A stretch of 64,000 nucleotides of DNA from Magallana gigas (taxonomy: Eukaryota). How positions within the stretch are numbered: position 1 is the first letter of the stretch; each line of letters opens with the position of its first letter. A program made the position numbers and the translations under genes. Below are positions 18,969-63,423 of the stretch, piece by piece. The notes below the pieces were generated by a model. That model did no database searches. It was not told where the DNA came from and saw only the letters and a program-made list of their open reading frames with translations. The stretch covers positions 19,468,001 to 19,532,000 of the forward strand of contig NC_088854.1 in assembly GCF_963853765.1 (NCBI RefSeq). The letters run 5' to 3'.

Positions 18969-21900
18969 TTAATCATCATAAAGATCATCGCCGAACGACT
19001 CCACATAGTGCTCCAAATTCACAGAGTTTTCCCTGTTTATGGGCAGTTTTTTAATGTCGCTCAGTCCGATGGGGCGTTTGATATCACTGTAGTGTTTCTG
19101 TCTCCTCTGAATGCACTGCTTGATTTTTTCTTTGATAAGATCTGTGTACAACAGCGTGTTGTACTCGGTCAGTTTAGACAGTCTCTCGAAGGATTTCTTG
19201 GGGTATTTGAAATTAAATGTTGAATATGGTCTTTGCGGATCGTCAAAAATATCAAAGTCTGCAAATTCTTTTTCTTCATCTGTTGTTCTGGGAACACCTG
19301 AAAAAAGGATAACAATCAAGTCTTTACTATTCAATCAGTCAAAATTTCAAACAATACCACTCCATTTATAATTCAACCTTAAGCATCTAAAGTTTTAGGG
19401 AATCAAAAAATTCAAATAATGTTTGTCTAAACCAGCACAGATAAACCTTTATAAAACAATAGTTGATAGATCAAGTAATCATTTTTTTCTAATCAGCGTA
19501 TAAATTTTGCAAATATTTTGGTTTTTATTACAGAACAAAATCCATGTCTCGAAATTAATGTTTAACAAAGATAAGATTGTAAGACATACCTGGTTTAATC
19601 TCATCTCTGAATCTGATGTTGGCTAACACAAAGTGTAAGACCACTGGACATTTGGGATCCTCTGGGTCCTCAAACACATAGCATTCCTTGCGACCCTCAA
19701 CATTCACAATGTTCTGATCAATCTTTGGAAATGGCACTTTATTCAGATTGGCCCATTGCTGAGCTAACAATACTTCCTGAAAAGTCATTTATCAAGTACT
19801 TAAAATTCATTTGATAAAACTAATCTAATAATGAATAAATTATTATGATAATCTTAATTGCTTATTAAGTTGAAGGAAATTAAAGATGATGAGAAAATTT
19901 TTCCAAATACAAAACAACATTGTCATTGAATATTACAGTAAACAAACTTTTATTCGAGAGGACTTTATTTCACAATTTACTAGAGATAGACTGGTTTGTA
20001 GAGACTAATTTTCGTGATCAAGCCTTATGATTATACACCCATGTTGTTATTTACAACCAAACAGCATAAACTGGTTCAGGGGTAGAAATATTCACATCAA
20101 AGAAGCTCTCACTAGCCTCGTGAAAATTTCTCCCACATGAATAAACGTTGGTTTACAGTATTTCCTGAGAGTCTGTCTCTCCATGTCACATTAATTTAGT
20201 AATTGTTTCAAATTATTTTCTTAGCTCATTTGTGAAAATTAGTCACCTGAACCCATTTCGCACAGGTAAATCAATTGTCATGAAATAAAGTCAGGTCGCA
20301 AATGAAAACTGCTTTACAGTATTTGAACTTCCGTGGGCGTTACCTTAAAGGGGAGGGCAGTGTCACTGGGGCGAGCACTGAAATCAAAGGACAGTATCAG
20401 GTCCACCTCCCTCTGGGGCCGCAGAACGAGGGGGAAGGGCGAGTTAAAGGTCAGGCCCCCATCAACCACATACAGCTTCTTCATGGAGGTCGGGTACATC
20501 TCAAAGATCTTGGAAAAGGGGTCTGAAATTTTGGATGAAAATAGTAAAGAGTTACCGTACTGTAAATTCCTAATTAAAAATGAGGAATTTAATATCGGTG
20601 TAAAATCGCAAAAAGCACATCTTGCGGATTTTAAAATCTCACTTATTTTTCAGGTGCACAGATACTATAAGCAAGTAAGATAAGAATTTGGCATTTGCAA
20701 TTTAATATTCTTGCGATTTGATGAAAAACAGTTGAATCACAGAATTAAGTACTCGCGTAAAATAAGGAATCTGCAGTATATAAGATTATGCATTGCATTG
20801 AATATTTCAAATGTGAGGTAATATTTGTGCAGTGACTAAATTCCTACCAATTCAGATGTTACTGTAGATTCCTTATCTTATGTGAGTACTAGTATTTAAA
20901 ATCTCTTCTTAGTGAATCTCAAGAACATAAAATCCTGAGTGCTTAACTTCTGTAATGATTTCATACAGTATACAGCCAAAAAAAAAAGTGAGATTTAAAC
21001 TAAAAGAGGAACTTCTTGCAATTTTACGCATTTGCATGTATCAATTCCTTGCGTTTATATAGAATATCATGTAAGCTTTAGCTTATCTGAAAAGGGTTTT
21101 AACAAAATTACTAGGGGTATGATTTCCTAGTAGAAAACATTTTCTTTTTACAAAAGGAAAAATAGTAAAGTCATCAGAAAGAGATTTCATCCTCTTCGTA
21201 AAAAGACATTTAAATTCAACAAATAAGAAACTCTAGATGGATTGAAAGCCATCTTACAAAACATAAAAGAAAAGAGCCACTCACTTGCACCACTGAATGA
21301 TGCATCAAGATCATCAAAGGCTGGACTACTTGGGTCTGCGAATGGTGAGAAGGGGTAGCAATGAGACATGGACAGGCCTCGCATGAAGCTGTGGACCTTG
21401 GCCGCTCGGCCTTCAATGGATTTCATGAAATGACTGCTTTGGTAGAGGTTCTTGAACATGTCTTTCCAGAAGGAAGGTCTGCTGGTTGTCTTTTTTCTGC
21501 TGCTGATTCTCAAGGCTTTCTTTGGTTTCAATATGTGTTTTTTTTCTGCTTCATTTTCATCACTGTCAGATTCACTTGAGTCACTTTCTTCATCAGATTG
21601 TGTTGACAAATCATTCGCCAGTTCTTTCACTACAAAAATATAATGTCATTAAAAGACACCAAATCATAGTATTGCTTTGGCACCTTCCTGTGTTCACTTT
21701 TTAAACAAACTAAATTTTTTGTTAAATAGACTCTCATATGAAATTTTGTAATATATGTTATCTAGTCAAAGAGAGATAACTGTTTTTTGCTTTAAATCGG
21801 CTAAAAGGATAACAATCTATAAATTTAAGCTTTATCCCCCTAGGAAACAAAAATTTATTTTTTTAAGCTGATTAAATAGAGTGTTACTAGACTTTGACCC

Positions 21901-28900: not shown

Positions 28901-31900
28901 TAATTTTTTATCGAAATGAACCATGGTATCAAATACAAATTTACATTATTTAGAATTAATAAAATTCAAATTATCATAATGAAAAAGTTTGCAATTTTTT
29001 TCCCTTATTGCTATTTTGACCTTTTTGCACTGAAAAAATACTATTTTTATTCATAAACGATTCAACATGCAATTAAATAATTTGAAAGTCTCAAACTTTT
29101 TCTCAAATTATGACAGACTTGTCAAAAGAAACTTATATATACAGAAAATCAAACCAAAAGTATGGGTCTATGATGTAAATTTTGAGATATGGCATGAAAT
29201 AAGCTAATTTTAGGGGTAAATTGGAGTTCACTTTTTCTTTACTTTTATGAAATATCACTTAAACATGCCAATATATGTAGATAGAAATATTGAAATATTG
29301 TTGAAATATGTTCTGTGAAACAATACGAAGATATCCCAATGCATAAACTATCTGAAAATTTGGTCTGCACGGAAAATAAGAAAGCTAAAATTACGGCACT
29401 CTAAAACAACTGAGTTATGAAAAATGTTCATTTTCTTCTTAAAAACCTTCCGCCACAAAATATAGTTCCTTACTACATTCTCTAAATATGGAACTTTTTC
29501 TTAACTATTTTATTCAGTAGAGTTTATTTGGCATTATAAAAAAGGAACTTACAAGTAGAATTCATATATGACACAGAATTTCCAGACTAGAGGTGACACA
29601 AAATGGCTACCCAAAATCAGAGGATCGAACCTCTTTAATATTAACTTTAGTGCATGATGCTAAATGTAAGAGGCAAAACTTGGCTTCAGAACTTTAATAA
29701 CTTTAGTGCATGATGCTTAATGTAAGAGGCAAAACTTCCAAAAAGGTATTTTTCACTCAAACATTAATTCATCATCAAATTAAATCAGAGCTATTAAATG
29801 TTTCATGTTTATATTACTTGATAATTTGAATAGAACAAACTGTACCATACAATTGTTTAATACATTAATAAGTACATATTAAAGATTTAAAAAACAATCT
29901 TAACTAAACAATTGTCATACAATGCAGTAGCTAGGTTTTGCTACAAAAAAGTAAGTTAGCATTCTGTTTGGAAAAACTTGGTTTTAGGCAGATTTTGAAG
30001 AAAAAAAGCTGCAATACTGTCTATTTTTCGAGGATGGGACATGTGGTGGCAACTGGCTTGAACATTAATCTGCTTATCTGAAGAGTTTCTAAATTTTAGT
30101 CCTTTGATTTTCATATTTTTATAGCTATAAAATTGTATATGGCTGTCATTTCATCAGTGCAATAATTGATTTAATTAACCACTATATGTAGATATATGTT
30201 AGTATTAATGATAAAATTTTGCTCCTCAAACCAAATAGATCCACCCCCCCCCCATTTCCTTCAACCATGAAGTCAGACTTACTTGTGGTGTGCCCACATC
30301 TCAATTACCACTTGTGATGTCTGAAAATAAAAATAATCTTTCTTTAATCTATTGACAATTATATTTGTACATGAAACATGAATTCATTTGAAGTGGGGAG
30401 TGTACCTCATTGAATTGAAGTGTCATTTCTTCTTTAGAATAGGGCAAACTGGTTAATGCTATTTTTTGAGGTTGTCCAAGCTTTTCATCAATTGTATAGT
30501 TAGCATCCATTAAAGTCACCTCTGGAAGTGGAGAAAAGAGATAAAGTTTTACAAGAATACAAAACAATCAAAATACACTTTAAAACACAAAGAAACATTT
30601 CTTTCTTTCTCTAATATCTATTCATGTGAGGTTGAAGAATGTGGTATTTTGCCATGTTCAACTGAATGATGAACAAACCGTGATAGGTCACTTAATAGAG
30701 GAAGTTTTAGAGGAATGCGAGGGTAGAGAATTATTAGTATTTTGAAATTGTTTCTGTCACATTGTCTGTTAACTTTAACCTTTTCTTCATTTATATCTCC
30801 AACATAATTCCCATCATTCCTCGATTTTGAATGCCAAATTTTTCTAAGCTTCATTATTCAAATTAATTATTCCAAGATACAGATCATCAATATCCTTAAG
30901 AGCTTGCAATAATGAGAAGTTGATGACAATTCTGACCACGTATCTTCATCTTCTTGTGACAAGAGGTCCATACATATTTGAGTATTAAAGGGAGTTCCTA
31001 CATCGAAACTTTCGATATAGTTTATCTCAACCAGGAAGGCAATGCATAAACAAGAAAAGTGGTCTTAAAAAAAATACTTCCTAGCATTTTTCTAAAAAAA
31101 CAAAGTACTGTAGTACAGATTCTATTTCACCATCTTCCTTATCACTGTAAACATGACATCATTCAAATTTAAAATTAACCACACTTAGAGATACATGTAA
31201 CGGGTACTTTTAAATTACATGTAGGTGAAAAACTGGATCAGTCTATGAGAAAAAAAAACCTTATGTGTTTCTAGTGTAAACTAAAAAACTCTATCCAGAT
31301 GTCCATACATACCTATTTCTGAAGGTATCTTGGGATTGAGGTAAAATTTGAATGTCTCGTTCCACTCTGGGTCTGTGTTGTTGTCAAAAGCATTGGTTCT
31401 CTGGTAACAGTTAGGGGCCCCTTGCACCATCAGGACTACATACGGATCAGGGGTATCCACTGCAACAAATGGGAAAATAAATAATCTCACTAAAGCATTA
31501 TTAAATGATCTCACTGAAACATTATTATATGATCTCACTAAAGCATTATTAAATGATCTCATTGAAGCATTCTCTATAATGGAGCTATAAAAAGCAATTG
31601 ATTCAAAATATCCTCAAAATCTATATACATACTTGTACCTGTATATATGTAAATTATGTATGTCTTTATGTCTTACATGGTTGGTTATTATATTAGATGG
31701 GGGTTTAGTTTTTGTTTATATTAATAATATCTATGCTCATAATTCCAGTTAAACTTCTGTATCCCATGTGCATGTACCTTGAAATTAACTTAGCCAACTA
31801 TAAAATTGTATATTTCATCAAAACAAGTTCCGCATTACAAAAGTACAAGACCTAGTTTGAAATACAGTACCTTTGCAATGAATTGTACAAGAAAAATCAT

Positions 31901-34900
31901 TGGAAATGCCACACTCTATGATCAGCCCATTTTTGATCTTTGAAATAATCAAGAAGAACCAGGATCTTAATGAATTATTTATAACTTAATCTTAAGTCCC
32001 CTCACATCATTGAGCTTATATATAATTGCTTGTAAATCCATCCTGACTAAGATATTTGGATTCTAACAAAAATGTGCTTTCATGCATATGTACAAAAGTT
32101 AGGGTATTTAAATATATAGTTTACAAACAGTGACTTCCTGTATAAAGGCCCAAATCTTCCTATTAACCTTTGTAATTTGTAAGAACTGCTCCTCTTTACT
32201 GTAAGAGATACATTCAAACAACGTCATGGAGAACAAGGGTATTATTCATTAAGTACAGGAAAAACCATTTGGAAATATGTGTTAAGAAATGGGCACTCTA
32301 AGTCATTGTTAAAAGTAAATACTTGTTTGTTCTTTTACCAATCCCTCAATTTATTTAAGGTCCAGTGTATGAAAATTGTTTTTTTTTATCAGCTTAATCT
32401 GACCCACTGGTAAAATTATCCTATGAATTTGTTGTAGCTCATGCATGTATTTCATAATACACATACACATGTCTTTGTAATAGCCTTTTGTGATCTGGAT
32501 TCCACGCACCACTCGGACATACAGAACGGCACAGGGGTCATGGGTCACCTGCAAAAGAATTGTCTCAAAATTTCAAAATTGACATATAGGGAAGCCCATT
32601 TAATATATACTGTAGATTCCTAATTAAACACAAAGAATAAATATCCATGTAAAATTGTGAGAAGAATGTCTCCCATATATTTTAAAATCTCGATTTTATT
32701 TTTCGGACAAATGTAAACTAGATGAAACTAAAAATTTGGTGTTCGCTATTTTATACTCTCACGATCTGATGCAAAACAGTTGAATCATGGAAATGAGTAT
32801 TGAAATAATGAATCTAAAGAAATTCTAATATGTCTATTGTCCATGATTATATGTACCCAGTATTTTACAAAAAATTGAAGGAAAATGTCATAAAATGACC
32901 ACGGGTCATAAAATAGTTCCAGTGAGTACTTGTTTACATTGATCTTCAATAATATCACATACAAGAATCTCTTTTCGAATACCCTATTATTTGTATATCA
33001 AATTTTAAAGGTGCCTATTTGTAATTAAATGCTGGATAGAGCAATGTTAATAAATAGAGTACATGTATAATATATGTACAGTGATAAATAATAAAAACAT
33101 GGGATGTGACAGAGGAAGAAGCTTCCTTGATCATAGATACTTAAAATACTAAACATGCTTGGTAGTACATGCTATTGTCACTTAATATATGGAATAAGAA
33201 TTAAAAACTCTCACATTGAAGCTGATCAAATCAATGGATGTTCTAAATTTACACCTGAAATTTCAAATCTGTGACTCATTTTTAAAAATCACCCCATATG
33301 TGCTAAATATGACACCATGTGCTAGTCATATGTTCAGACATTTAAAAGCTTTTTTTTGTCTTGATTCTCGATGAATGAAAATTTGTTACAAGATCATAAT
33401 GCCGGTATTTCATTCATAGAATTACCATATCTGAGAGAGGAAGGGCAAACTAAAAAATGTACTATATTTTGACTTTCCAGTCAAGATTCATTTTGTAAAA
33501 TATCATTTTTTGAGTCATAACATTGTTTTAAAACACATGAAATTAAGTTTACAATTGTATACTCAATCAGCATTTGTGAATCAAAATGTCCAGGGATCGA
33601 AAATCTTAAAAGTTTAGTGTTGAGTATAACATGTATTTTATGAGTTTTAACAATTTTCAATGTGTATAAGAATTTTTGAAATGACACATATGTTTGATAG
33701 TAAACTTCATTTTTTCCCAATAATATATACAATATAATTTTCTCCTACACTTGAAGTGAGTGCAGCTACCTTAGTAAAATGCTTATTAAACACTAGCTTA
33801 CCTGGAATACCTGAAATGGGTCGAAACTGAAATAAAAATTGAACAATCATTAACATTTAAACAAAACTAAACAGTCGGTATATAATCATAAAGAAAGAGG
33901 CATATTAGCAGTGATAAGTATTAGACATTTGAGCTTTTCAGAGCTAGCTGGCCTATGTGGATTTAATTGTACAATGTCTGACTTAAGCATGCATACTATT
34001 CCCCCACCCCCTCCAAATTAATCCTGCAATCAACAATCCAGATAGGAAAGTGATATAGTGGATTTTTTTTAGATTGTTGCTAGTGACAATATGCTCTTAC
34101 CTTACTTATTGATACCATAGACAATGATGTCTAGACAACTTCAGGTTTATTATTTTCTTGCCGAATAGGGTAAAAATGTGGCTCATGCATTGGTGGCAAC
34201 AGCATGTGCCACAAACATTTGTTACTAAGAACATTGTTTTGAAGTATTAAGGTGTCATGAAGAGAGAGTTGAGCAAACAAAATATATGATTTTTCTTGTA
34301 AAACCTTATTTGATTGGCAGAACAATTTTATCTACCGGTAAATCATACATCAACATAACTGGCCTATGCTCCGCCAATAGGATGCCTGAGCAAAATGTTA
34401 TCATCAACTTGGTTTTACAGTGAAACTCAGTTTTAGCAAAATCTTAGAGAGCAATGGATTTGGTTTGCTATATCTTTAGTTCTGTTAATTAGAGCATACA
34501 TATTTGTTATAATAAGTAGGTATAGGGAATTTGTTATATAATATACACATATTTTCTTCCACAACACTACAATTTTTACATCTCGGGGCATGAAATTGAA
34601 ATAAATATACATTCGTTATTTCAAAACCTTAAAGAATCAGATTGTAAATAAAAGGATTTTTGTTGAAATCAATTCATTCAAACTATTATGCAATTGATAA
34701 TGCTAATGCTAACTTTTAACACTTTAAAGATATTCAATGTAATAGCTTTACATTTCATTTCTTTTAACTTTTAGAGACTCAGAATTGAAAATCACTTTGT
34801 TCTAGTTGTTATATCCAAATTCTTTACAACCATCAAATTCTGCATGAATTTGCAAAAAATGTTGCCAGGGACTCCATAAGAATTTGCTACATCAAGGTTT

Positions 34901-41429: not shown

Positions 41430-41820
41430 ATTTAGTAGCTGAGGAGTATACCATACCCCATGCAACAAGTTGAGGGGGTATAATGTTTTAGACCCATCTG
41501 TCAATCAGTCTTTTGGTCAGTCCATCAGTCCTAATCATTTCAATAAGCGCAACTCCTATTAACTGCTCATAAAAATTTGCAGGTAATAAGGACATAATGT
41601 GTTTATTGCATATTTGCAGGATTTTTCTATTTCTTTAATTTTCCAAAAATTTTGATCCTAAGATTTAGTCTCAGAACTTTGTCAGTGCAACTCCTCTTCA
41701 ACCGCTGCAAGGAATTTCATGAAACCTTGTAGGTACTGAGCACAAAAGGTATAAATGGGCATATTTGCAGGAAACTCTCGATTCCATTATTTTTCGGGAC
41801 AGAAATATGAAAATTAAGAC
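41430..41820. mobile_element. Degenerate HINE remnant
   Basis: CAACAAGTTGAGGGGGTATAATGTTTTAGACCC followed by (GTCA)n-like microsatellite and two related subrepeats (GCAACTCCT..AACxGCT..GCATATTTGCAGGA). Boundaries approximate. Confidence 0.45.
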
Positions 41821-44800
41821 ATTCTTATGTATGATTCTTGTTTTGAAATAGGGAGTGTGGGCAAACATTAGATCATGCATTCTTTGATTATCTCCTTTTG
41901 AATCATCTATCAACACCCTCAAAATTGTGAGAGAACCTGTCAGAAAGATTCATAAAGTTGAGAGGGGAAATTGTACAAAGATAAGGGGTACACAATAAAT
42001 AGATTTGATTATTTCTTGTTTTGAAATCATTACAATCTACAAACAAAATAATCTCCTTTGCAAACAAAACAGTTGACTCAGTTTTTCAAAATTAATATGT
42101 AGCCATCTTTAGTTAAGGGGCCAATGTACACAGAAGAGAGTGACTTAATCACTCAAACGTGTTATATCAAACGGATTATATCAATCAAGAAAAATTTGAC
42201 AGCTTGTGACTGTTGAATTCTAATTTTTTAATCTATTGTCCAATAATGAAAAAAGTACATCACTTTTTAAAGCCTCTAACAGCATAATGAGTTTCCCAAT
42301 TCATAGCAATAATTGTATTTTAATTTTTAAGGAAACAAACATATTACAATGAATCTGTAGCTGGCATACCTGAATCACTAATACTATATAGCAACCAAAT
42401 CACTTCCTTTAGTGTACCCTTATCTGTGCACACTCTTGTCTTGGTCAATAGAGTGTTCCCAAGTATCGTACTAGGCCAGTAATTAAGTCTGTAAAATAGT
42501 GATGTAAGCTGGACCACAGGAAAGGGTCTCTAAGGTTTATTCCATTGTTTGATGGGGAGCAAGGTGATAAAATGTGTTGTCTATGGCTATGGAGCCTTTG
42601 GGTCAAGTGGAGGGGTGGTTGGACCTCAATAACTACCTCTCCTCGTGGAAATGTTTGTCACCACCCATAAAGCTCAGTCATGGAAGGTGAAATAATAAGT
42701 ACTAAATTCTTTGTGAACAGCTTTGGGCCAAATTGATTAATTCTGAGATATAGAACTACATGTAGCAAATGTTTGAGTGTCTTTGCCAGTAAGGATTCAT
42801 TTTGTGTAAATTTTTTAGGTTTCCAATTTGGAAGGGTGCTTAATTATATGGGTCATCTGCAGTTGGCACAATTTTAATTAAAGATGCTCTCTATGTGTTG
42901 CTCTCCACCAAGCCTTGATTCCAAACAAAATGCATGATAATTACCAGTTACCAGTTTCTGCCCCTGATACATGCTGGAGTATCTCAGTATCCCTTTCATG
43001 CATGCTTGCTTTCGATACACAAGATAATCTTCTCTAATCACCAGGTAGTCAAAATATTCTAAAGAATGTTTAAAGTAAATGACAAAGGGCTTATTTATCC
43101 TGTTCCTGAGCTGTTGTCAGTTTTTAAGTAGTTTTTTATTTCATACGTAAGCTCTCCTCAAGACTGCAGTTTTCTATGACAGACTCCATAAGGAGGGGTG
43201 CATTGGTTCCAACACCTAGCTTCTGAAGGGAGCTTAACGGTACTGTAGAGAGAGGCTATCTCAGGTAAAAATGACAATTGGGAGTTCAATTGCGTTCTAG
43301 ATGAACGGTGTAGCACTGATATTATCGTGACAGGGAGAGGTACCTGGTCTAAGGCAGAGTAAACGTACTCCGTGTGCGAGAGAGGACTTTTGTGTGGGAT
43401 GAATCAAATTCTAGTTCCGCTTTTTTGGGGGAGAATATAAAGCAGTCTCTTGACATTCGCATTTCATGACAATATTTTGACTGGATTCCTAATCAGTGGA
43501 AGGTTTTAAAGGCTCCGCTGTTTGTATAGGTAAGAAATGCACTGGTGTGAAACAGACTGTTCTTACTGTCTGACTTTCTTTAGGGCTAATGACAAACACA
43601 TGAATTTTAATGCTAGATATTATTATACGTGTATCAAAATTTCACACCTAGTCAATTCTCTCTCTCTTTCTCTCATTCACTCTTTCCTCTTGCTCTCTCA
43701 TTCTCTCTCATTCTCTCTCTCTCATCAAATCAATCCTCTTTAATTTTTATGCGTGTTAATGCAGTTAGTTTTGAATTTTCATTGAATACTTTAGACAAGC
43801 ATATCCAAGACCTTTGAAGTAACAATGCAGTCATTTATTTTGGGAAAATCTTTATGACCCAAATATAAATGTAACCTTACTTTAAAATTATTGAAATAAA
43901 GTTGTTTTAATGAATAAGCGCAGCCTAAATATAAATTATAAAATTCAGCAATCTGCATAAAAAAGATGAATTAATACTTTTTAAAAGTGTTCATATTCAT
44001 CATATACTTTTGCTAAAGAAAAAAAAACCCAGCCATCATTACCATTAGGTATGCAAAATTGATAACAAAATTGACAGGTTCAGAATAACTAAAGGTGAAT
44101 AGTATACCATAATTAACACTGTGCAGTGTTTCTGTGAAATGCTAGAATCTTGTACCCCCCCCCCCCCCCTGATTTGAATCAACATTCATATGCAAAACAT
44201 TATCTAAAAGATATATTCAAAGAATCTCCTGACATGGGGGTTGGCAGTGACAATTAGTATAGATGCTACAAATTTTACACATTTCAATAGGAAAAAAAAA
44301 ATCTGTTAAACTAAGAGGAATGTTCTTACATTTTTCTTTGAAGGCTTATACTGTCAATATTGTATTCAATTTGAAGAGGATTGGGGAGCAGTTTATAAAC
44401 ATCTCCCTTTATGATGCACAAAAGATCAGGTCAACAAGTAGAATCCCTAGTACATTTGAAGACAAATATAAGCTCTTTAAAGGGAGCTTGAACAAGTCTT
44501 GGGAAATATAATGAAATGGAATAAAATTAATACATGTACCGGAAGGATAAAATTGTTAAGCTACTAGCTGCATTGTATTTGCATGGACACTTTAATTGCA
44601 GAGTTTTCTTAAAGTTGCAGCATTTCATCAGCATAAAATGGATTATTCTTAGCATACAGTTCCATAACATGCCACTAAAGGAAAATGAAGAAAGGATAAA
44701 TTGCTGTGTCTGTCAAAAACTTAAACTGCTCTTTTGATAATTGAAAAAAGAAAGCAGAAAATGTTATGTAAAGCGTGTTTTGTGATTTTCTGAAAAAAAT

Positions 44801-45954
44801 TTCACATGTAAAATGATTTGCGAGTTAAATTATAATCTAGTTTTTAAAATAATATTGCCTGTTCTTTAATATTTTTCAAAAGAAAAGAATCTTTGAAGCA
44901 TATATACATGTATCAAGATGGTTTACTGGCAGCAATTTATTATAAAGTATATTTTAAGTCTCTTTAAATTTTTGCTCAAGGAACTTTGATAGATAAAGAT
45001 GTTATACTGAAAAGACTTGCAGAAATATTTAAAAAATTGTAATATGTCTATTTTGAGTATCAAAAGTAGCACAAGCATCAGGCCATGTTAGTTATAAAGT
45101 GAAAGGAAAATTTACTGTAAAATCACGTATATAACACACCCATGTAAATCATACCATCCTTTTTATGTAAAATTGTAAGAACAAAAATCAATAGATTTGT
45201 TTAAAACTCTATTATCATAAAACATCGATAGTTATTTTGGAAAATGGTGGCTGTTGATTTTCATCCCTTGAGCTTTGTTCCGATCACAAAATTACAGAAA
45301 TTGCATTTGGATTATAAAATGATCATGAAACATCGATAGTTTGGGGGGAAATTGCAGTCATTGATTTCGATTCTAAGCAAGACCTGTTATTTTTCGCCAT
45401 TTTTGGTCAACTTTGGGGGGTGCGTATTATACATGATACTTTATGGTTAGCAGAAAATGGTTGAAAGTTAGTGTTATGACCATATGTGCCATATCTCTTT
45501 TGAATTCTTGCATTAGAGATGCGCCTCAGTAGCCAAGTGTCCGGGAGATGAGAAAAACGAATCAGACACTTGGCTAGCGAAGATGAGATGCGCCTTTGAA
45601 AAAAATTAATTTCGATCATGTTAATATGCTTTTGTAAACTGGTTTCTTAAAATTTCACTCACAAGTATTCTATATATTAAATTTGCATTATTATCAAAAG
45701 GTAAAAAAAATTCAAAGTCAGAAGGCTACCCTCAGCAGAGATACATTACATTTTATCAGAGAGATCAGATTACTTAAATGATGTTTTGCTCAAACCAACC
45801 TAAAACTTTTTGTCACTATCCTGAGACATGCGAATGTATAAGTGCATACAATTCTAGTCAGGATTTCTGCTAATAATGTTACGCAGCTCTGATTGAAAAA
45901 AACCCAGTAATTACAGACAACTTTGATATGAATCTTACACCATTTAATACTCAC

Positions 45955-46035
45955 CTGTATTAGTTTATAGCCTTTGTTGTATTATAGCAGGAACTTGTTG
46001 ATCTGAAGGTCACGAAGTCAAATCATGCAGGCACA
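45955..46035 (-). other. Candidate non-coding exon 1 of the cPLA2 gene
   Basis: Perfect donor CAG|GTGAGT (exon ends at 45955). Minus-strand TATAAATG at 46064-46057 predicts a TSS near 46033. The first coding exon has an acceptor at 35692, so an upstream exon must exist. Confidence 0.4.
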
Positions 46036-46056
46036 CCTTTTTATGTGTATATCATT

Positions 46057-46328
46057 CATTTATAGAACTCAAAAAATAATATTTTTGTCGAAAAGTGACG
46101 TAAATTGTTCATAAATAAATATGACATACCAGTGTAATGGACGTACCAGTCCATTAAAGGTTGATTTAAGGGTTTTTCCCAATAATTTTAAACATGCATG
46201 GACAAGGCATTTCACTTATCACAAATCATCAACTCGTGTTGTTCATGTACCGGTATTGTATTATACATATTGTATTAATTAATATATGCATGAATAATCA
46301 CTTTCTCTACCACGTTTCACTATAAAAG
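46057..46328. promoter_or_regulatory. Candidate bidirectional promoter between cPLA2 and COX
   Basis: Outward-facing TATA boxes (minus 46064-46057; plus TATAAAAG 46321-46328) enclose TGACGTAA (CRE/ATF-like, 46096-46103) and GGGTTTTTCCC (Rel/kB-like, 46170-46180). Confidence 0.35.
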
Positions 46329-48145
46329 TTTTAAATTGTAAAAAGATTTGATCTGGTTCAATGTTTCATTTTAAACATATGTTCCAATTACCGGTACATT
46401 ATTTGTTCCTTGAGTCGATGAACTCGGCAAATATAGCAAGCACATATTTGGAGGGGGTGCACCCACCCCCAACCCTCCTGGGGAATCCAAATTAAGTGAA
46501 TTATTGAAGTAAGACATGTATGACAAAAAAATACCTTGGAATAAGGAAAAGACCCCCCCCCCCCCCCGACAATTTTCTGGATCCATGCATCCATAGACCG
46601 TTAATATACACTTTCTAATATAGAAGCCACAAATTCGAAAATATAAAAAATACTGATACAGATTTATTTATGACCATGAAATAAGCATATAAATGTGCAT
46701 CAATGAATTCTCTGCCTTATGCTTCAGCTATTCTAAATCAAATTTTAACATTAAAGCTAGTGATAAACACTTGTTTTCAAAGGAACTTAAATTGTGGAAA
46801 GTGGCTTCTCATTCACAGAGAATTAATAAGAAAAAAATGATAATTTCTGTTCACAACATTAAGGTATTTTATGGAGCAATTGCGTCAATTATCCTTGACA
46901 TATAGGTGACCTTGTAATACATGTCATGAATTTTTTGAGAGATAACAATAATGTGCAAGCATTTGCACGAATATAAAATGTAGAAGCAGTTACCACATGA
47001 AATAGTTTGCTGCCTAAAAGTTAAATAAGATAATTATGCTTATAAATTTACAAGCTGGTCTTGACATTTTATGGCATATACAGTATATTGCCTATAAAAT
47101 AGTATATTCATGAGTTCTCCCGATAGATCTATAGTTTCAGTTAAAACACATTAAGGTTCTCCTATCCTCGTGCACACTCAAAGTGTTTTTTTTTATCATA
47201 GAAATGCTATATATTTTTCCTTCAAACTTTACAAATGAAATGAAATAAAAAGAAATTTGCTGATGGTATCCATGCATTTTATGAAGGTATTACAATTTTG
47301 GCCACAATAGATAGAATGGAATAAATATACATCAAATAAAAAAAAAAAAAGATTAACTGGTGCATCAATGGCTCAAACCCCTTTACGAAGTAGTAGTAAT
47401 GTAGTGTAGTAGGTCTCTTTTGAACCACTAAACAAGCAGGTTATTTAACGAGGCCGACTACAGAACGAGTACGCACGCTTTGGTGCATCATTTCATTTGT
47501 ATTGTGACATCATCTTTTTGCTTTGTTGACGCCATGGCGTGATAGTTTCAATTGCAGATATTCAGCGAAATTTGTTGAAAAAAGCTCGTTTGATGCGTAA
47601 ATTTGATAATATATTGTGGAATAAACATAAATGTCTCAAAGTATAAGCTATATTTGGACTCGGATCGAAAACGTGAAGAGGGTTCAGCAAGCCTAGCCCT
47701 CTGTCACGTTTTAAATATAGCTTAATTCATATATTTCAAGACAGTAACCATGTTTTTTTTATATTAATGACCCTTAATATGTGATGTTTTATATTTATTT
47801 ATTACCTAAATATGTCTGAATGTTTTAATAATACTATAAAGATCACCATTTCCGTCTTTGTCAAATAAAAAATAGCCATTATCTGACAAATCTGGGAAAT
47901 TGGGCATACAAAAAAACAACTTTGATAAGACCCCTGGAACAAACCAGGAGGTAAAAGGTTTTTTTTTATTTGACCATTTCATGCCTTTTAACAAAAACTT
48001 TAATATGTAGAACAGAAAAAGAAATCCTAGTAGGGCAGAAGTTTTTAAAAAATTGCAAAATTGATACATTTCAAGCAAAATCCCATAGGGTCCTATGTTA
48101 AAAATTAACAAACTTTGAGATTGCCCCTTAAACAAACGGTGTGGT

Positions 48146-48351
48146 ACTTGGTTTCATTAATTTTCGTGTGTGTCAATTTTCGTGGATTTTCTGAAAACCA
48201 CAGTTTCAAAGATACGTAAATTCGTGGCCAATGATCCTATAAATACAAAATGTTAGTTGAAATTGAACTTCAATGAACATTTAATTTCGTGGATCAACTT
48301 AACGAAATCCACGAAAATTGGTATTCAACGAATATTGATGAAACCACAGTA
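48146..48351. mobile_element. TA-flanked MITE
   Basis: TACTTGGTTTCATTAATTTTCGT ... CGAATATTGATGAAACCACAGTA. Left end degenerate. Confidence 0.55.
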
Positions 48352-48762
48352 AATGTCTTATTTTTTTATTTTAAAAAAATATTTAACTCAGTAGAAATTC
48401 ATGTACAAAATTTCCTTCAAAAATCTAGGGCAGAAAAAATTAGACCCGGCCTCGTTAATATAACTCTTTTTAATATTAACACTACGAGACTTATTAAATT
48501 TGTCTATATAAAAGGCTTATTTATTTTACGAATAAAAAAAATTCTAGATAATTTAGAGTTATCAGACATTGGTGTGGAACGAATATCGTTAAATGCACTA
48601 AGAAAATTAGTTGAACTGGAGATGTGAAATAATTTTCAGAAGATCAATTTTCATAACTAATTCAACATGCTGGCCTGAGAATTGATGAAATATATTACTG
48701 AAATTGAAATGAAACATTGATATTGATTGTGTATTGAATATTTTCAGACACAGTACATTAAA

Positions 48763-51700
48763 ATGTGGTGGAGGGCAGTTATACTGGTCAGTTTCATAGC
48801 TCCTGCACTAGGTAAGTATATGCAGTGTACATACTGGTAATATATAAAGTTCTTTTTTAACCTGTTTACATGCTTATAAATATGGAATGTTGAAATAAAA
48901 CTTCTTTGACAATTAATTTCATAGTTTCAATTTCTTGTCTTTTATGAAGAAATGTGATGAAAATGTATTTCCCCGCGGTACAGACTAAATCAAATTGTGA
49001 AAAATAAGACAAACTGTTTTCAACGCAAAGTTCTGTGTATATATATAAGTTTCAGGTGGCCATAACCCTTGTTGTTCATACCCTTGTGAAAACAATGGAG
49101 TATGCATGACCCAAGGAGAAAACTATTACTGCGACTGTGCAAATCTAGAATTCTATGGCAAACACTGTGAAATCCGTAAGTCATTTAAATTATGTCAAGA
49201 ATTTAATCCTTGATCAGCAGTGATGAAATTTCATCTAAGGTAGAAACTTTTAACACCTGAAAGTTAATTGTGCTGTTTTACAAAATCTCTTGGTTTTTAT
49301 ATGTTGATAAAATCAAGTGAATGTTATTGAGAAATCTGAAAGGACTCTGAATGTGACCTGATCTTTTTTCAACTTGGATGAATAATGAGGGCAAAAACTA
49401 TTACCTGCAGACACTGTGTGGGTTAAGTGTTTCAGAAACCTTAAATTAAATCATTTGGTTATTTTGTAAACAAATTAACATAAGATATATTTTTCACATG
49501 TGTCTCATTTGCATGTACTGGCAGTATGAATGATCTAATTATAATATAAACTAAAAATAGCATCTCTGAAGTAAAAAAAAAAAATGTAAGAGTGAAATAG
49601 GCATTTGTACTGGAAAGTTACTTTTTAATGTCTGCATATGTGACTGTATCAAAATCAAGGGCATTCGGATTAAATTGAAAATTAATATGGATATATAAAC
49701 TTCATTTGTAAATATATGTAATTCCTGGAAATACTGCTTAATTTTCTATTTTCTTAATGACATGGATATAACGATCGTCTCAGAGGCATAGCAATAAGAT
49801 TGACAAACATTGTAAAAAGCTGTTGGTCATCTTAAAATACCTTTTAGCAAACAGGCATGATTACCAGTAGACAAAATTGTCTACAAGAAGACATACTTTT
49901 AGAAGATTATCTTAAATTGAACCTTGCATTTAAAAATATATTTACTGGTAAATCTTTTTCAAAACTTTAAATTACGCATTGTTATAATACTAACTACTAG
50001 CTCTAAAACACTGGTCTGTTGGATATTTTATTTAGTTTCTCCAAATGGGACACGAGTGTTAATTGTTATTTGTGGAAAACTATTTTCTAGCTACATATAA
50101 TCTTGTAAATAACTGAAAAATAAATGATACGTAAAATTATAATGGATTATGTCGATGTCCAAAGATTGCTCAATATATATGAAACTTTATTTGGTTTTAG
50201 CTACCTTTATGAAGAAGATCAAGCTGTTTTTAAAACCAAGTCAAAGCACTCTTCATAACCTGCTGACATCCAAAAAATGGCTGTGGAATATCGTCAACAG
50301 CGTTCCATTTCTGGCCAATGCAGTGATGAAAAAAGTTTATACCAGTAAGGCATATACATACTATAAAGTAGAGAAATATAGATAGTCAAGATATCAGCAT
50401 CTTTTAAGTTTGGTAATTATACATGCATCTCTTACCAGTAATGTGATCAGAGATCAACTTTGTTAAGCAAAGGTAATTTAGTTTTACTTACATAGTGTAT
50501 TATACAATTTAATTAACAATTAACCTATTATGAACAAAATGTATTTGCAAATTTTGAAAACCCCTCATTATGAATACTTGTTTTAGCAAACTTATCTGCG
50601 AACATACATGTATCTCAATTAGTCAGATTGGTACATATTGTACGTAGCAATCCATTTTTTCATTAAGGCATGCTCACCTGACCTTGCAACAGCAGATAGT
50701 TAATTATGAAAGATAGAATGATGCAATAGAAATAATTCAGCAATTAGGCCAAATAAAAAATATGCAAATTTAGATGAAAAATTATAAATTTTCAAAAATT
50801 TCATTTAGTAAATATGAACAAAAGCCCTTAACAGATTTGAATTTAGAGTGGATGATATTCAACTGAATTGATTGATACAAATAATATAAGTTGATAAACA
50901 AAACATTTAATCTTGTGAGGTACGTTGTGAAATACAAAGTATATATCTTGATATAGCGAGCTACCTTAATTAAGAAATGATAAAGTCAAGTTGAATTTGA
51001 TGAATATACAGTAAACATTTCTATTTTCTATTTCCTTCAGTGAGGTCAGATATGATAGACAGTCCACCAACCTATACCTCTGAGCACGAATACATCACAG
51101 TGGATGCTAATTTTAACTATAGTGTCTACACACGTACCTTGCCTCCAGTACCAAAGGAATGCCCAACACCTATGGGAGTATGGGGTAAAATCTAAAATAC
51201 ATAGAAAATTTGTAAATTATTATTAATAACAACATGTTGAATCATAATACACAAAATTTATGTGCTATTGTGCCAAACAAATAACATTATTAGTAGTAGA
51301 AATGTGTAGAAGATAGTAAAATATTCGTTAAAAATATACTGGTATAAGAAAATGGTACTGTAAAAATGGTTATTTACACGTGGAGGAAATTTACACTAGC
51401 TACATGGAAAGCTTAAAACTGCGTAAAATACCCCTATGTCTATGGTGAAAAATCAAAACTTTAGAGTGGTAAATCATCCTTCTGTATGTTAAATAATCAC
51501 GCATATTGTTTGACCTTAGAAAATGCATACTTAACCACCATCGTAAATAACTACTTTTACAGTAAATTTGCCTTTGGCCTTAGGCAATATGAAACCCGGG
51601 GTTTTCCTGTCACCTTGGGGCAAAAAATGTAGTATGTTGCCCTTTGCCAAACTAATATCACACACTAGTGCCCTGGAAAATGAACAGAAATTCAGAATTT

Positions 51701-54700
51701 ATCCAGGTTTTATAAACTCATTTATTCTTTAATTAGGAAAGAAGGTGCTACCTCCTGCTGAAGACATTGTGAAGGCTTTCTTCATCAGAACGGAATTCAT
51801 TCCCGAGCCGTTAGGGACGAGTGCCTTATTTCCTTACTTTGCTCAGCACTTCACTCACATGTTCTTCAAGACTGACCTAAAGAAAGGGCCGCAGTTTCAG
51901 TGGGGAGGACATGGGGTATGTAATCTAATATCTTTTCTATCATGGCATTGTTCAGAGTTATTTCATCAAATTCTTGCCCTTATTTTGAAGCCTCCATGGG
52001 ACACTAGTGGCTATTAAAATGGAAATATTGATCATGTTGGTTTATAGATAGAGTGGACGATTTACCTACATACATGCATAAAAACCTCTTTAAAAAAGTG
52101 AAATCCTTTTCTGAAACATGAAGGAGCAGGCCAGTGCTTATCTCTAATGTTTCTGTGGTGCTAAGAGGATGTGAGTCATTGACTTACCCTGGATGGGACG
52201 CAAGTCTTTGCAGGTTAACCCCCTGCATAAGCTGGTACCTATAAATTGCAGCTGGATGGTCTATTACACTGTTGATATAGTACCTTGATAAAGAACACAA
52301 CACACAACATCAAGTGACCTGCACAGAGGGGCTTGAACCAGCGATCTTTGGTCTACTGGCTAAACACCTAGTACTAAAGCTTTGTGCTCCACATCAAAAC
52401 TTGTCACATTTTAGTTTATTAGCCTTTTTTTGCTCAGAACCTTGGGAGGAATTTATAGTCATTTTATCCTAGCATCTCTGATATACTGTATTGGCATTTT
52501 ATGCTGACCAAGTGTCATATTTTGGGAGTTTTAACAATGGGAAAATACCAATAACACCAGCTGGAGTTGGAAGAGATCATTATACTGACATTTACATAAT
52601 GGGAGCAGCTTTGAACAGCAGCCTGAATTTTAGACAATCTTTAGCCCATTTTTTTCTTAGCTCTGTTCTTTGTTAATGCTTAAACATTTTTAGCACTTTA
52701 TACTGAATTATCTTTGTAAAAATTAAAACTGCTTTTGCTTTGTAAAATCAACAACTTTTTCCTGTTCTTCTTTTTAACACTTTCAATGAATGATTTCAAA
52801 ATGCAATTTTTTTCACTTTGACCATACTGCATAGTTATCATACATAACAGTATAATATTACCGGTAGAATTCTACAGGCAATACAGTAAAACATGGTTAT
52901 AACGAAGTGCCAGGGACGGGCAATTTTGTTTCGTTATATCCATCAAGTTCACAGCATATAATATAGTAATGGGGAATGAAAATCACTTCGCTGTAAGCGT
53001 CAATTCATTATAAGCATGTTCGCTATTGCCATGTTTTACTGTATATAACTGATTTTCATTTAAGTTTGATAATTATACTATATGTACCTTAATCAACAAA
53101 GCTCTATCTGTTGGTCTACATCTCAGGCTTGGATGTAATATGTATTGCATCATTTTTGCATTCCTTTCATGAATGCATGCTTGGACCAGCATTGTATCTT
53201 GTGTATCATGACATTTTCAAGGTAGACGTTTCTCATGTGTATGGAAAGGACAGAGATTCCGAGAATAACCTAAGATCTTTCAAAGATGGGAAACTCAAAT
53301 TCCAGGTACTTACTTTAATAAAAAAAAAATTCTTCCACAGATATGTGAAACATGGAGTAAAAATTCTATAAACTGATGAAAAATTATTTAATTGAAAGAC
53401 AATAAATAAATGTTTTGATTCTCAGACACAGCCACATTATGTCAAACGCTGCAAATTTATTTGCCATATATTGAAAAGGGGAATATTGAGTCAGTTATTT
53501 TTAAGTTAAAAAACTGAGTTTCACACTTATCCAAATCTCATGAAAAATACATGCCTGCCACATTTCTATTTGAAGCATTTGGTATTTTTATGTTTTTTTG
53601 CCTTAGATCATAGATGGAGAAGAGTGGCCCCCCTTGACTTCTGAAGCAGATGTTCCAATGGGATATCCAAAGGGAATGGAAAAGACCAAGCAATTTGCTC
53701 TGGGACACTCCTTCTTTGGTCTACTACCAGGATTGTTTATGTATGGCACAATCTGGTTACGAGAACATAACAGAGTGTGTGACATCTTGAAAAAGGAGCA
53801 TCCAGAATGGAATGATGAGAGATTATTTCAAACTGCCAAGCTGGTGATTCTAGGCAAGAAATCATTTCTGTTTTCCAAATTACATTTTATTTTGCCATAT
53901 ACACCATTTCCATGAAAAAGGGTGAATTAAAATATTTGATTTATTTTCCTTTTAGGAGAGACCATTAAAATTGTTATAGAGGACTATGTAAAACATCTCA
54001 GCAACTATAATTATGATTTGATCTTTAATCCTGAATTGCTGTTTGGCGAGCCATTCCAGTATCAGAACAGGATTGCTTTAGAATTCAACCATCTTTATCA
54101 CTGGCATCCCCTGATGCCAGATGAGATTAACATCAGTGGAACTATGTACAATCTAAAAGAGTTCATGTTTCATCCAGAGCTTGTTGTAAAACATGGAATG
54201 AGGAACTTTGTGGATTCTCTGTCCAAACAGAGAGCTGGATTAGTAAGTTCTCTCTCTCTCTCTTGTTATGTCTGTAAATTTGAATGTTAATTTTTTTATC
54301 CACATGATTAACTGCTATTTGCCAAAAAAAAAAACCTTTCAGTCATAGCAATTTACTTTTGATCAGGTACCAGTGTAGTTGATACCCTTGATGTTTTAGT
54401 AGTTTTTCTCTTCTTTATTTGAATGATGAACTCAATAAAAAAATATGGACTTAGCAAAATATTATTAGACTATTTACCAGTGTATAGAATGGTCAACCAC
54501 ATCAGTCGTAAAAGCCATCAAAAGTTTTCTCCTCACTTGACAAATGACAACAACCATATAGCAGATAACTCTATAAGGTTACTAGACTGTGTTAAGGCCC
54601 TGTCACACCAAGCTGCGTCCCCACGGCGTGTTCACGGCGTTGTAAAATTCATGGAATCACCTTAAGATCGCAAGGAAAATTCAGAAAAAATGTAGTTTTA

Positions 54701-56677
54701 TTGGAAAATTTTACAAAAGGAGATGTCACGGCGTCCTGACGGTGAACGAGGCGTTCTTACGGAGCTCCCACGGCGTGTAACTGTGTTTCCACGGAGTTCT
54801 ACTTGGCGATTAACTGCGCTCTCACTGAGTCTCCGCCGAGCACTCATGACGTGCTAGGAGTTATAACCGCGCGTCCACGGCGTGCTCTGTGTGCTGACTG
54901 CGTGCACGAGACGTTCTATACTTCTTTGTACCGTAGGTTAATATTAATTTGTACAATTGTATGGGAAACAAACAAGAATTTACAACTAGAAAATAAATGA
55001 TTATAAAATCATTTTGATTTTATGAAAAGGTACACTGTAATTGAAACATAACTACTTCTAACCAATTTGTGAATGACTAGAACAAAACTCTCAGTAGTCA
55101 GGTCTACAAAAAAGATCCGTTATTAGTTGTTAGAAAACATAGAAAAGATGTGAAAACATCAGAACCAAATGTCATGAATTCCATCTATGTCCATTGATAG
55201 GTCTTGGAATATTAGCAAATGCTACTTTTTACATAGTCATCTACATCCAATTTCATAATTATTACATCGCTTGCTATTGTACAACAGCCATTGTTCGAGT
55301 TTTCGTGGTCTTGATGACAACGCACTAGAAACGCCGTGGGAGTGCGGTATAAACGCAGAGGGAACGTCATGAGAGCGCAATGAACGCAGCAATAGCTCGT
55401 TGGGGTCGCTGTGTAAATGCAGCCAAATGAAAAACAACTTGTTCAAACGCTGTGGATGCGCAGTGAGAGCCCAGTGAAAGCACGATAGAGACGCAGTGAG
55501 ATCCCAAAGGACTCCATGAGGTCTCCGTGCAAGCGCAATTGACTTGTCACTGCGTCTTCACTGCGATTAGCTGCTTTTCTTGAGCGCGCCGACGTAGCTC
55601 TCGTGGCGCTGTTGGATATCTTACGGTGCTGTCACGGCTACTTCACTACGCTTCTACAGCGTGTTTATCAGAACGCAGAGCCACGGCGCGTACTTTGTGC
55701 ATGTTCAAAGTGCACGCGTCGCATGGCGTTCTAAAATGTTCAAGGCGATCCCACCGTGACGGACGAAGATGCTGTTGCGTTGTTACGGCGCTGTAGGAGA
55801 CTCTACTGCGTTTTCCTTGGCGTTTTACATTATTTAAGGACGCAGCGGGATCGCCGTGAGGACACAGCTCTGGTGTGACAGGGGTTAAACATATCGTCAT
55901 TAAGTTATCTCTTAACAAATTATAACTTTAGGAAATAGTCAAATTTTCCTTTATTCAATTTTAAGTTTGGACCCCGAAATCATGGCCCCGTGACAATTCC
56001 TGTGGTGACAGAATTGATCAAACATGGCCGCACCTTAAGGCTGCAGTCATTCAACCAGTATAGAAAGAGATTTGACATGGAGCCTATCAAGTCTTTTGAA
56101 GAACTGACAGGCAAGTATTGAGGCATTAATTTTCTTGTAAAGCTTCGAATCAGAAGAAGTATGATTCCAAGTTCTTAAACTTAATTACCCTAGCTTTTGG
56201 TAACTTGGCAACCAAATTGCATGAAGCTTAATTTGCATCCAAAGTGATCAAAATGCATATATAAGAGTAGGACATTGTATTTCATTTTAAATTGAAATTT
56301 CATTGCTTATATTTATAGGAGAGAAGAAAATGGCCAAGCAACTTGAGGATTTCTATGGTGATGTTAATGCTGTGGAGTTTTATGTAGGATTGATAATGGA
56401 GAAAAGAAGACACAATTCTATGTTTGGTGACTCTTTGGTACAAATTGGTGCCCCGTATTCTGTGAAGGGTCTGATGGCAAATCCTATCTGTAGTCCCAAG
56501 TACTGGAAACCTTCTACGTTTGGTGGAGAGGTTGGGTTCAACATAGTAAAAACTTCTTCACTTAAAAAACTGTTTTGTGAAAATATCAAAGGAGAATGTC
56601 CATTAGTATCATTTAGAGTCCCAGACTATGTTGAGGGAGATGTAACAGAATTCATCAACCAAAAACTAGAATTATAA
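48763..56677 (+). CDS. PTGS2: Cyclooxygenase / prostaglandin G/H synthase (probably co-orthologous to vertebrate PTGS1 and PTGS2), 585 aa, 10 coding exons
   Basis: Exons 48763-48811, 49056-49175, 50201-50344, 51041-51184, 51737-51915, 53222-53305, 53607-53853, 53956-54242, 55966-56110 and 56319-56677 join in frame (1758 nt). Signal peptide MWWRAVILVSFIAPALG, EGF domain NPCCSYPCENNGVC, membrane-binding helices, MRSDMIDSPPTY (Arg120), FAQHFTH (His207), WLREHNRVCD, EFNHLYHWHPLMP (Tyr385, His388), GAPYSVKGL (Ser530), C-terminal KLEL. The acceptor at 48746-48747 shows a 5'-UTR intron. The symbol reflects nearest similarity, not proven 1:1 orthology. Confidence 0.97.
52130..52385 (-). mobile_element. 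tRNA-derived SINE with a conserved central domain (V/Meta-domain-like)
   Basis: Minus strand reads a tRNA-like head (GGTTCAAGCC B-box), then GGTTAACCTGCAAAGACTTGCGTCCCATCCAGGG ... CACAGAAAC..GAGATAAGCACTGGC, resembling SINE central domains as recalled. Confidence 0.6.
52882..53043. mobile_element. Tc1/mariner-type MITE, family A
   Basis: TA|CAGTAAAACATGG ... ATGTTTTACTG|TA. Shares CACTTCGCTGTAAGCGTCAATTCATTATAAGCATG with 18190-18367. Confidence 0.75.
54596..55885. mobile_element. PIF/Harbinger-like non-autonomous element in COX coding intron 8
   Basis: TAA|GGCCCTGTCACACCA ... TGGTGTGACAGGGGT|TAA (3-bp TAA TSD). GC- and CpG-rich relative to its flanks, with about 8 exact CACGGCG copies. Confidence 0.8.
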
Positions 56678-62734: not shown

Positions 62735-63423
62735 GTAATAATGCCTTAGTTGCTTTTTTGGTGACATAAGTTATCCTATATTGTCTGTCATTGTATATTG
62801 CTTCCTTAGCATTGGTCATGAACTTTTGAACACTTCAAATTTCTCTGAATCTATTTGGCCAAATTGACCAAATTTGTAATTTTGCATTTGTAGTAGAAGG
62901 GAAACACAAAAAGTGAAATTTGCTTTACAGGGTTAAGTATGCATGGTTATTTTTCCAGCTATGAAATTTAATCCCCACAGAATCATTTAAATCACAAATC
63001 AACTAAATTTCATCTTCATAAAAATATCTGCCTCGATCTACAGTAGTGAATGTGCATGAATTGTTAAGGATTCTCCTTCTTTTCTATGATGCATCTAGGA
63101 GGCAAAGCGAGTGCATGATAAAAATGATCACTGGAGCCTCTACCAAAATTGTAAAATTCTTGACTCAATGATAAGGGGATCTTGAAATAGGGAGGGTCAT
63201 ATTGATTATATTGTTTTATACTAAAAAATAGTGAAAATGCAATGGTTCTTAATTAACTTCTCCACTCCTGGACATCTAGGATGCAAACTAAGTCCTTTGT
63301 TAGAATGAGTAAGGAAGTCTCTAGCACCAAGACTGCAAAATATCATACAACTCCTTGGCCAGGGGTTCTGATGTGAGAGCGTGTTTCTAATGTGGCTAGG
63401 AAAAAGAGGACACAACTTTTGAT

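Follow-up and report, generated by a model that had tools for sequence, protein, structure and literature searches.

The stretch of 64,000 nucleotides analysed here (the window; C2:19468001-19532000 of the 564-Mb, 29-contig assembly of Magallana gigas that served as the searched genome) holds a cytosolic phospholipase A2 gene (cPLA2, minus strand) and a cyclooxygenase gene (COX-a, plus strand) standing head to head, and we consider it likely that the two form an ancient conserved microsyntenic pair, probably of bilaterian age and older than 500 million years (My). cPLA2alpha frees arachidonate, and arachidonate is the substrate of COX. A reading made from the letters of the window alone (the sequence-only reading) had proposed that this linkage predates the protostome-deuterostome split, and the proposal has held up: the 5'-5' pair recurs in bivalves of other orders and also in a gastropod, an annelid and a teleost, and is known in human from a published paper, so that a linkage older than that split is the best reading. 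An ancestral bilaterian head-to-head linkage is, therefore, well supported.

Results

The two genes and the DNA between them

The spliced models place the start codons of cPLA2 and COX-a 13,125 bp apart, the same figure as the sequence-only reading had given, and both genes proved to be real and complete where it had put them. The main features are as follows.

18969..35638, minus strand: cPLA2 gene, coding part; S-type (the COX-linked clade described below) and group IVA-like, 773 aa, 16 coding exons, homologue-guided spliced model
35638-35625, 33826-33802, 32548-32467, 31459-31313, 30521-30406, 30320-30283, 27363-27231, 26896-26760, minus strand: cPLA2 exons 1-8
26494-26272, 26091-25977, 24777-24640, 22925-22812, 21629-21285, 20522-20344, 19776-19590, 19297-18969, minus strand: cPLA2 exons 9-16
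35639..48762, no strand: intergenic region between the start codons; 13.1 kb, 32% G+C, candidate for shared regulation of both genes
48763..56677, plus strand: COX-a gene, coding part; 587 aa, 10 exons, spliced model with An_peroxidase on its exons
48763-48811, 49050-49175, 50201-50344, 51041-51184, 51737-51915, 53222-53305, 53607-53853, 53956-54242, 55966-56110, 56319-56677, plus strand: COX-a exons

The cPLA2 model runs from an ATG at 35638 to a stop at 18969-18971 with GT-AG at every junction, and its first exon contributes just 14 coding bases, in agreement with the start codon named earlier. Pfam matches to C2 (exon 4) and PLA2_B (six exons) lie on its exons, and the top match of exon 11 is human cPLA2-alpha (PDB 1CJY). 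The model is 85% identical to the C. virginica cPLA2 P0283 and 94.5% identical to P0285, a protein from public transcript assemblies; the latter served as the proxy for the window cPLA2 in the structure alignments. The alignment of P0285 with 1CJY spans both proteins from end to end and scores 737 bits, as compared with 305 bits for cPLA2-delta. The residues of the C2 domain that bind Ca2+ are kept, namely the DTPDPYV, N65 and MDANY motifs, which align with 1CJY, 1RLW and 1BCI; also kept with respect to 1CJY are GSGGGFR (Arg200), GLSGS (the Ser228 nucleophile) and the Asp549 motif, and VVDGGLT is present in the window model itself. The putative mitogen-activated protein kinase site, Ser505-Pro, is retained as well, with YPFSPF aligning to human YPLSPL and the same motif found in the window cPLA2. 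By all the hallmarks tested, the window cPLA2 is group IVA-like.

COX-a extends from an ATG at 48763 to a stop at 56675-56677 and is identical at 585 of 587 residues to the transcript-derived P0162. Against PDB structures it scores 742 bits with PTGS2 and 723 bits with PTGS1, with residues 22-571 aligned, and the full-length alignment to PTGS2/PTGS1 covers the signal peptide, the domain like epidermal growth factor, the membrane-binding domain and the haem peroxidase fold. When COX-a is compared with human COX-2 (5F1A), His207 (FAQHFTH), Tyr385/His388 (LYHWHP), Ser530 (GAPYS), Arg120 and Tyr355 are all kept. The structure of 10 exons is shared with abalone and fugu: the internal exons of 144, 144, 179, 84, 247, 287 and 145 nt are identical in size to those of abalone COX, and those of fugu ptgs2 (144, 144, 182, 84, 247, 287 and 148 nt) differ in two exons, each by 3 nt. 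Messenger RNAs of both cPLA2 and COX were found in public RNA runs, three of which (X2, X8 and X9) contain both.

As the sequence-only reading had also stated, no other recognisable gene lies between the two. Scans of the intergenic region for recognisable genes, tRNAs and Rfam families came back empty, and none of the ten open reading frames (ORFs) tested, of which eight are intergenic, matched a Pfam family. The earlier reading had named a misassembly between 36 and 48 kb as something that would undo it. An artefact of this kind, in which the genes would not be truly adjacent or intact through a fault of assembly or annotation, is scarcely credible: we found no point in its support, the window is without any N, the two reading frames are complete and their splice sites canonical, COX-a agrees with its transcript-derived protein as given above, and the independent assembly of another oyster, Saccostrea cucullata, has the same order, UBR4 > < cPLA2, COX >, COX >, with collinear intergenic blocks. 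The same gene order in an independent assembly argues against misassembly.

The pair in other species

Identifiers for both families came from one representative search with a two-row mixed profile (the last exon of COX and one cPLA2 exon), the scores of which are not family statistics; two homologue searches then gave the species, and coordinates were read from twelve contig regions. The record that carries COX and the one that carries a cPLA2 of about 770-850 aa are equally long in Mya, Dreissena, Mercenaria, Haliotis, Mytilus, Saccostrea and the annelid Owenia, and in Dreissena and Mercenaria this cPLA2 is of the S type. The orientation is divergent, 5' to 5', in every species with record coordinates as well as in the window. 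These are as follows.

Saccostrea cucullata: UBR4 (plus); cPLA2 (minus) 38388-52216; COX 1 (plus) ending at 73641; COX 2 (plus) 82955-90463
Mya arenaria: a divergent gene with C2 and PLA2_B, its end 6.7 kb before the annotated COX gene
Mytilus trossulus: COX (minus), 5' end 61186492; cPLA2 (plus), 5' end 61252411; 65.9 kb apart
Haliotis cracherodii: cPLA2 (minus), 5' end 6609166; COX (plus), 5' end 6711773; 102.6 kb apart
Owenia fusiformis: COX (minus), 5' end 22471963; cPLA2 (plus), 5' end 22502270; 30.3 kb apart
Takifugu rubripes: a cPLA2 of 746 aa, its end 2.3 kb upstream of ptgs2; found by tblastn, independently of annotation

Human PLA2G4A and PTGS2 are also head to head, about 149 kb apart (PMC11139948). 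The outer neighbours, which serve as an internal control, differ in every lineage: the gene downstream of COX is a different one in each species, UBR4 stands beside cPLA2 only in oysters, and it was absent from the 10-kb flanks of Mytilus, Haliotis and Owenia.

How often such a linkage would be expected by chance can be taken from randomised gene orders, in which less than 0.0002 of pairs were linked in four or more lineages with no more than four genes between them; conserved pairs are, furthermore, enriched in conserved 5'-5' orientation (PMC3514665). When the same rule is applied here with vertebrates counted as one lineage, the pair counts as linked in four lineages, the intervening genes being none in the oyster, none in Mya (by annotation), one C2-only model in Owenia and none in fugu. 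The Owenia model encodes 154 aa with a C2 domain only and lies between COX and cPLA2, 4.5 kb from COX (L021:1-5505, L022:1-9518); its exons resemble the first C2 exons of cPLA2, and it could be a set of alternative 5' exons of cPLA2 or a partial duplicate.

Gene trees and orthology

In the cPLA2 tree, from which groups IVB-F were left out, all mollusc genes linked to COX fall together in one clade (S, support 100), which the linked Owenia gene joins with a support of 89. A second clade (L, support 99) is composed of longer, unlinked mollusc paralogues together with the chiton, octopus and nemertean entries listed, and the chordate IVA, ascidian and amphioxus sequences form a separate clade (support 97). 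An approximately unbiased test did not reject the placement of the linked Owenia cPLA2 with clade L (p = 0.23). From this topology, the S and L clades are read as lophotrochozoan co-orthologues of chordate group IVA. In the chiton (Liolophura) and the nemertean (Tubulanus) the cPLA2 entries are on other records than COX, but these entries are L-type paralogues and therefore say nothing on the linkage of the pair.

In the COX tree, the COX1 and COX2 clades of vertebrates group together (support 100), amphioxus falls outside this group (support 98) and mollusc COX branches earlier; COX has been duplicated independently in oysters, mussels and unionids. Judging from its place in this tree, the oyster COX predates the split of vertebrate COX1 and COX2 and is co-orthologous to PTGS1 and PTGS2. 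The orthology supposed by the sequence-only reading is thus borne out in part: the cPLA2 is IVA-like and the COX is a genuine one, but the gene tree gives no one-to-one orthology of the oyster cPLA2 with vertebrate PLA2G4A, and the COX tree gives no specific orthology of the oyster COX to PTGS2 over PTGS1. It had also suggested that PTGS2, and not PTGS1, kept the ancestral locus. The position of mollusc COX outside the COX1/COX2 duplication agrees with this, and fugu ptgs2 adjoins cPLA2, which is consistent with PTGS2 having kept the ancestral locus; in Paramormyrops, PTGS1 and cPLA2 are on records of different length.

Conserved blocks in the intergenic region

The oyster intergenic region was compared with the 10 kb upstream of the Saccostrea cPLA2; later searches left out a TC-rich microsatellite stretch at 43687-43727 in the intergenic region. 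Six collinear blocks with 70-83% identity are common to the intergenic DNA of the two oysters.

35768..35816, no strand: conserved non-coding block 1; about 130-180 bp upstream of the cPLA2 ATG, 80% identity, collinear
39064..39260, no strand: conserved non-coding block 2; 72% over 202 bp, collinear, no conserved reading frame, single copy
41888..42095, no strand: conserved non-coding block 3; 76% over 222 bp, collinear, all frames with stops, single copy
42307..42610, no strand: conserved non-coding block 4; 70% over 307 bp, collinear, single copy
43062..43097, no strand: conserved non-coding block 5, short; 83% over 36 bp, collinear
43257..43557, no strand: conserved non-coding block 6; 72% over 311 bp, collinear, single copy

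Coding sequence was ruled out as an explanation of the blocks by tblastx, which showed stops in every frame and no preference for any of them, and repeats were ruled out by searches of the oyster's own genome, in which the blocks are single copy. As a control, the cPLA2 introns (about 14 kb) and the 3' flank (13 kb) were compared with Saccostrea and gave no collinear non-coding match. Since the blocks are collinear, non-coding and single copy and the introns have nothing of the kind, we regard the blocks as constrained non-coding sequence and as candidate regulatory elements.

The form of regulation that might be shared is narrowed by distance. In a bidirectional promoter the 5' ends would be less than about 1 kb apart; here the start codons are separated by 13,125 bp, and in fugu the gene ends by 2.3 kb. 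The pair is not an operon, and a classical bidirectional promoter of less than 1 kb does not describe it either; the term "operon-like" used by the earlier reading is a loose one for two genes that are separately and divergently transcribed. With distances of 2.3 kb at one extreme and about 150 kb at the other, a shared regulatory landscape is a better fit than a bidirectional promoter.

Discussion

Probable age of the linkage and how it may have been kept

Several observations weigh against an ancestral pair held together by common regulation. The adjacency in Mya is based on annotation, and no cPLA2 coding exon was present in the 10 kb examined beside COX. The middle 46 kb in Mytilus and 83 kb in Haliotis are outside the regions examined, and other genes may intervene there. 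The microsynteny expected from the window was recovered in Saccostrea, Mya, Mytilus, Haliotis, Owenia and fugu but not in Daphnia or amphioxus: no cPLA2 lies within 10 kb of COX in Daphnia sinensis, where the neighbours are Band_7 and an aldo-keto reductase, and none lies within 10 kb of COX P0192 in Branchiostoma lanceolatum. Amphioxus P0192 and the cPLA2 among the matches listed are on records of different length, and for the copies examined the two are apparently on different chromosomes. The distance within the pair, from 2.3 to about 150 kb across species, is a misfit with one simple shared promoter. Also, the intergenic blocks are undetectable at the DNA level beyond oysters in the flanks of Mya, Mytilus, Haliotis, Owenia and fugu; when the intergenic DNA was compared with these flanks and that of amphioxus, two marginal matches (E 5e-4 and 3e-3) were seen and were not counted as conservation. 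Neither an NF-kB nor a full cAMP response element (CRE; TGACGTCA) consensus occurs within 800 bp of either ATG, and a scan of the 800 bp around each ATG for NF-kB, CRE, AP-1 and C/EBP consensus sequences gave nothing convincing. Finally, when gains and losses are simply counted, two gains are as parsimonious as one gain with at least two losses, or more so.

The last point, together with the unlinked state in the sampled invertebrate deuterostome and arthropod, would suit a pair that had formed separately in the lophotrochozoan and vertebrate ancestors, by chance or by selection for pathway clustering. We nonetheless hold such convergence to be improbable, because adjacencies are lost far more often than they are gained, because among about 20,000 genes a given pair in a given orientation would be expected by chance with a probability of about 1e-4 or less, and because the IVA-like paralogue class and the 5'-5' orientation are the same on both sides.

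An ancestral linkage might still be a neutral one, namely a chance survival in slowly rearranging lineages with no regulatory coupling. Pair distances that vary 60-fold, a pair broken in Daphnia, and apparently in amphioxus, with no obvious harm, and intergenic sequence that is unconserved beyond oysters would all be in keeping with this. We think it unlikely, however, given that all other neighbours have been replaced while the pair and its orientation were kept in at least six lineages over more than 500 My, that randomised gene orders give less than 0.0002 per pair for four lineages (PMC3514665), and that the oyster intergenic blocks are conserved and the introns are not.

We accordingly return to the ancestral linkage and propose, tentatively and with somewhat less than even confidence, that it is a two-enzyme prostaglandin module of bilaterian age, kept by selection for more than 550 My in spiralians and vertebrates, in which a shared landscape co-induces both steps. 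Within the pair itself, a Ca2+-dependent IVA-like cPLA2 would free arachidonate or eicosapentaenoic acid from membrane phospholipid, and cyclooxygenase would oxidise the freed fatty acid to prostaglandins G2 and H2 (PGG2/PGH2), as the conserved catalytic residues and general knowledge of the two families suggest. Both genes would be transcribed outward from the common 13-kb intergenic region. Most likely the bilaterian ancestor already had the two genes side by side and divergent, an arrangement that would have been kept in molluscs, annelids and vertebrates (there as PLA2G4A-PTGS2) and broken in Daphnia and, apparently, amphioxus. In oysters, COX would later have been duplicated in tandem, giving COX-b and then a last-exon fragment, and a second, unlinked cPLA2, presumably of the L type, also exists. 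Elements in the shared intergenic landscape may serve one or both genes, in which case breakpoints between them would be selected against. Support for such shared cis-regulation, which the sequence-only reading had supposed, is indirect and consists of the intergenic blocks conserved among oysters and the three RNA runs with both mRNAs.

Surroundings of the pair

Beyond the pair, the window and the DNA next to it contain the following features.

98-5400, plus strand: UBR4, 3' end; at least 8 exons with parts of the E3_UbLigase_R4 domain, in tail-to-tail orientation to cPLA2
G000:C2:19604535-19620752, plus strand: COX-b, an intact second cyclooxygenase, 72.5-88.8 kb past the window end; 586 aa, 10 exons
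G000:C2:19627515-19627879, plus strand: third COX piece; the last exon alone, with a frameshift and a stop
G000:C8:13771571-13774488 (13.77 Mb), minus strand: second cPLA2 paralogue, on another chromosome and with no COX nearby

COX-b is 79% identical to COX-a and matches C. gigas XP_034302669 at 584 of 586 residues, and the third piece is probably a pseudogene fragment. The 80 kb between COX-a and COX-b contain reverse-transcriptase and DDE-transposase remnants and an ORF of 410 aa with no Pfam family. The second cPLA2 paralogue, on C8, is presumably of the L type, as its non-linkage to COX suggests. No terminal prostaglandin synthase was seen in the 174 kb examined around the pair.

The last COX intron (56111-56318, 208 bp) is present in COX-a and COX-b and apparently missing from both Saccostrea COX copies, in which residues 421-587 align unbroken (L020:184-684 and L020:17006-17506). 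Intron 8 of COX-a contains, at about 54590-55890, an interspersed repeat of about 1.3 kb that is rich in G+C (41%); it has at least 40 genome copies at 85-91% identity (551 first-look candidates), and its ORFs match no Pfam family. Downstream of COX-a, the minus strand at 59574-60053 has an ORF of 159 aa with a helix-turn-helix domain of the paired-box or Sleeping-Beauty type, probably left over from the DNA-binding part of a Tc1/mariner-like transposase, and at 62195-62746 there is a minisatellite with open frames on both strands, the minus-strand unit of which is roughly MTDLGAVSSGLL.

Significance

An ancestral cPLA2-COX pair would date the coupling of arachidonate release to prostaglandin synthesis to early bilaterians, and its position would speak for PTGS2-PLA2G4A as the ancestral locus and for PTGS1 as the copy that moved. 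It would also indicate which of the two mollusc cPLA2 paralogues matters for prostaglandins in spawning, immunity and stress, a point of use to aquaculture. For work on co-regulation, the oyster offers a compact invertebrate locus of 13 kb with six candidate regulatory blocks, as compared with about 150 kb at the human locus. If the selection-kept module is true, it would belong to a very small number of metabolic-pathway clusters that have been kept across animal phyla; to our knowledge, consecutive pathway enzymes rarely stay together in animal genomes. We found no earlier report of an invertebrate cPLA2-COX linkage in the literature, and the pair is not named in the main text of the survey by Irimia et al. 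2012 (PMC3514665), although it could still sit in supplementary lists.

Comparison with known systems

One close counterpart is the vertebrate PLA2G4A-PTGS2 locus (human 1q25-31; teleost pla2g4a-ptgs2), which has the same enzyme families, the same 5'-5' orientation and the same immediate adjacency as the oyster locus; the COX structure of 10 exons is nearly identical, and the oyster cPLA2 keeps the IVA hallmarks. The two loci differ in that the oyster COX precedes the COX1/COX2 split and is tandemly duplicated, in that lophotrochozoans have two cPLA2 paralogues, of which the oyster gene is one, and in that the flanking gene in the oyster (UBR4) is unrelated and no non-coding sequence is common to both. 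The human pair is flanked by PDC and TPR.

Bacterial operons and the metabolic clusters of fungi and plants likewise place consecutive steps of a pathway side by side; unlike these, the cPLA2-COX pair consists of only two intron-rich genes, which are divergent and make no polycistronic mRNA. Among the conserved ancient microsyntenic pairs (CAMPs), those of the co-regulation type, for example HSPD1-HSPE1 and HADHA-HADHB (Irimia et al. 2012, PMC3514665), are also comparable. As in those, cPLA2 and COX are unrelated but functionally linked genes that are adjacent across phyla, 5' to 5', in at least four lineages, whereas their intergenic distances are much larger than a bidirectional promoter would span. 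The cPLA2-COX pair thus joins the known class of conserved ancient microsyntenic pairs and is unusual among them in uniting two consecutive enzymes of one pathway.

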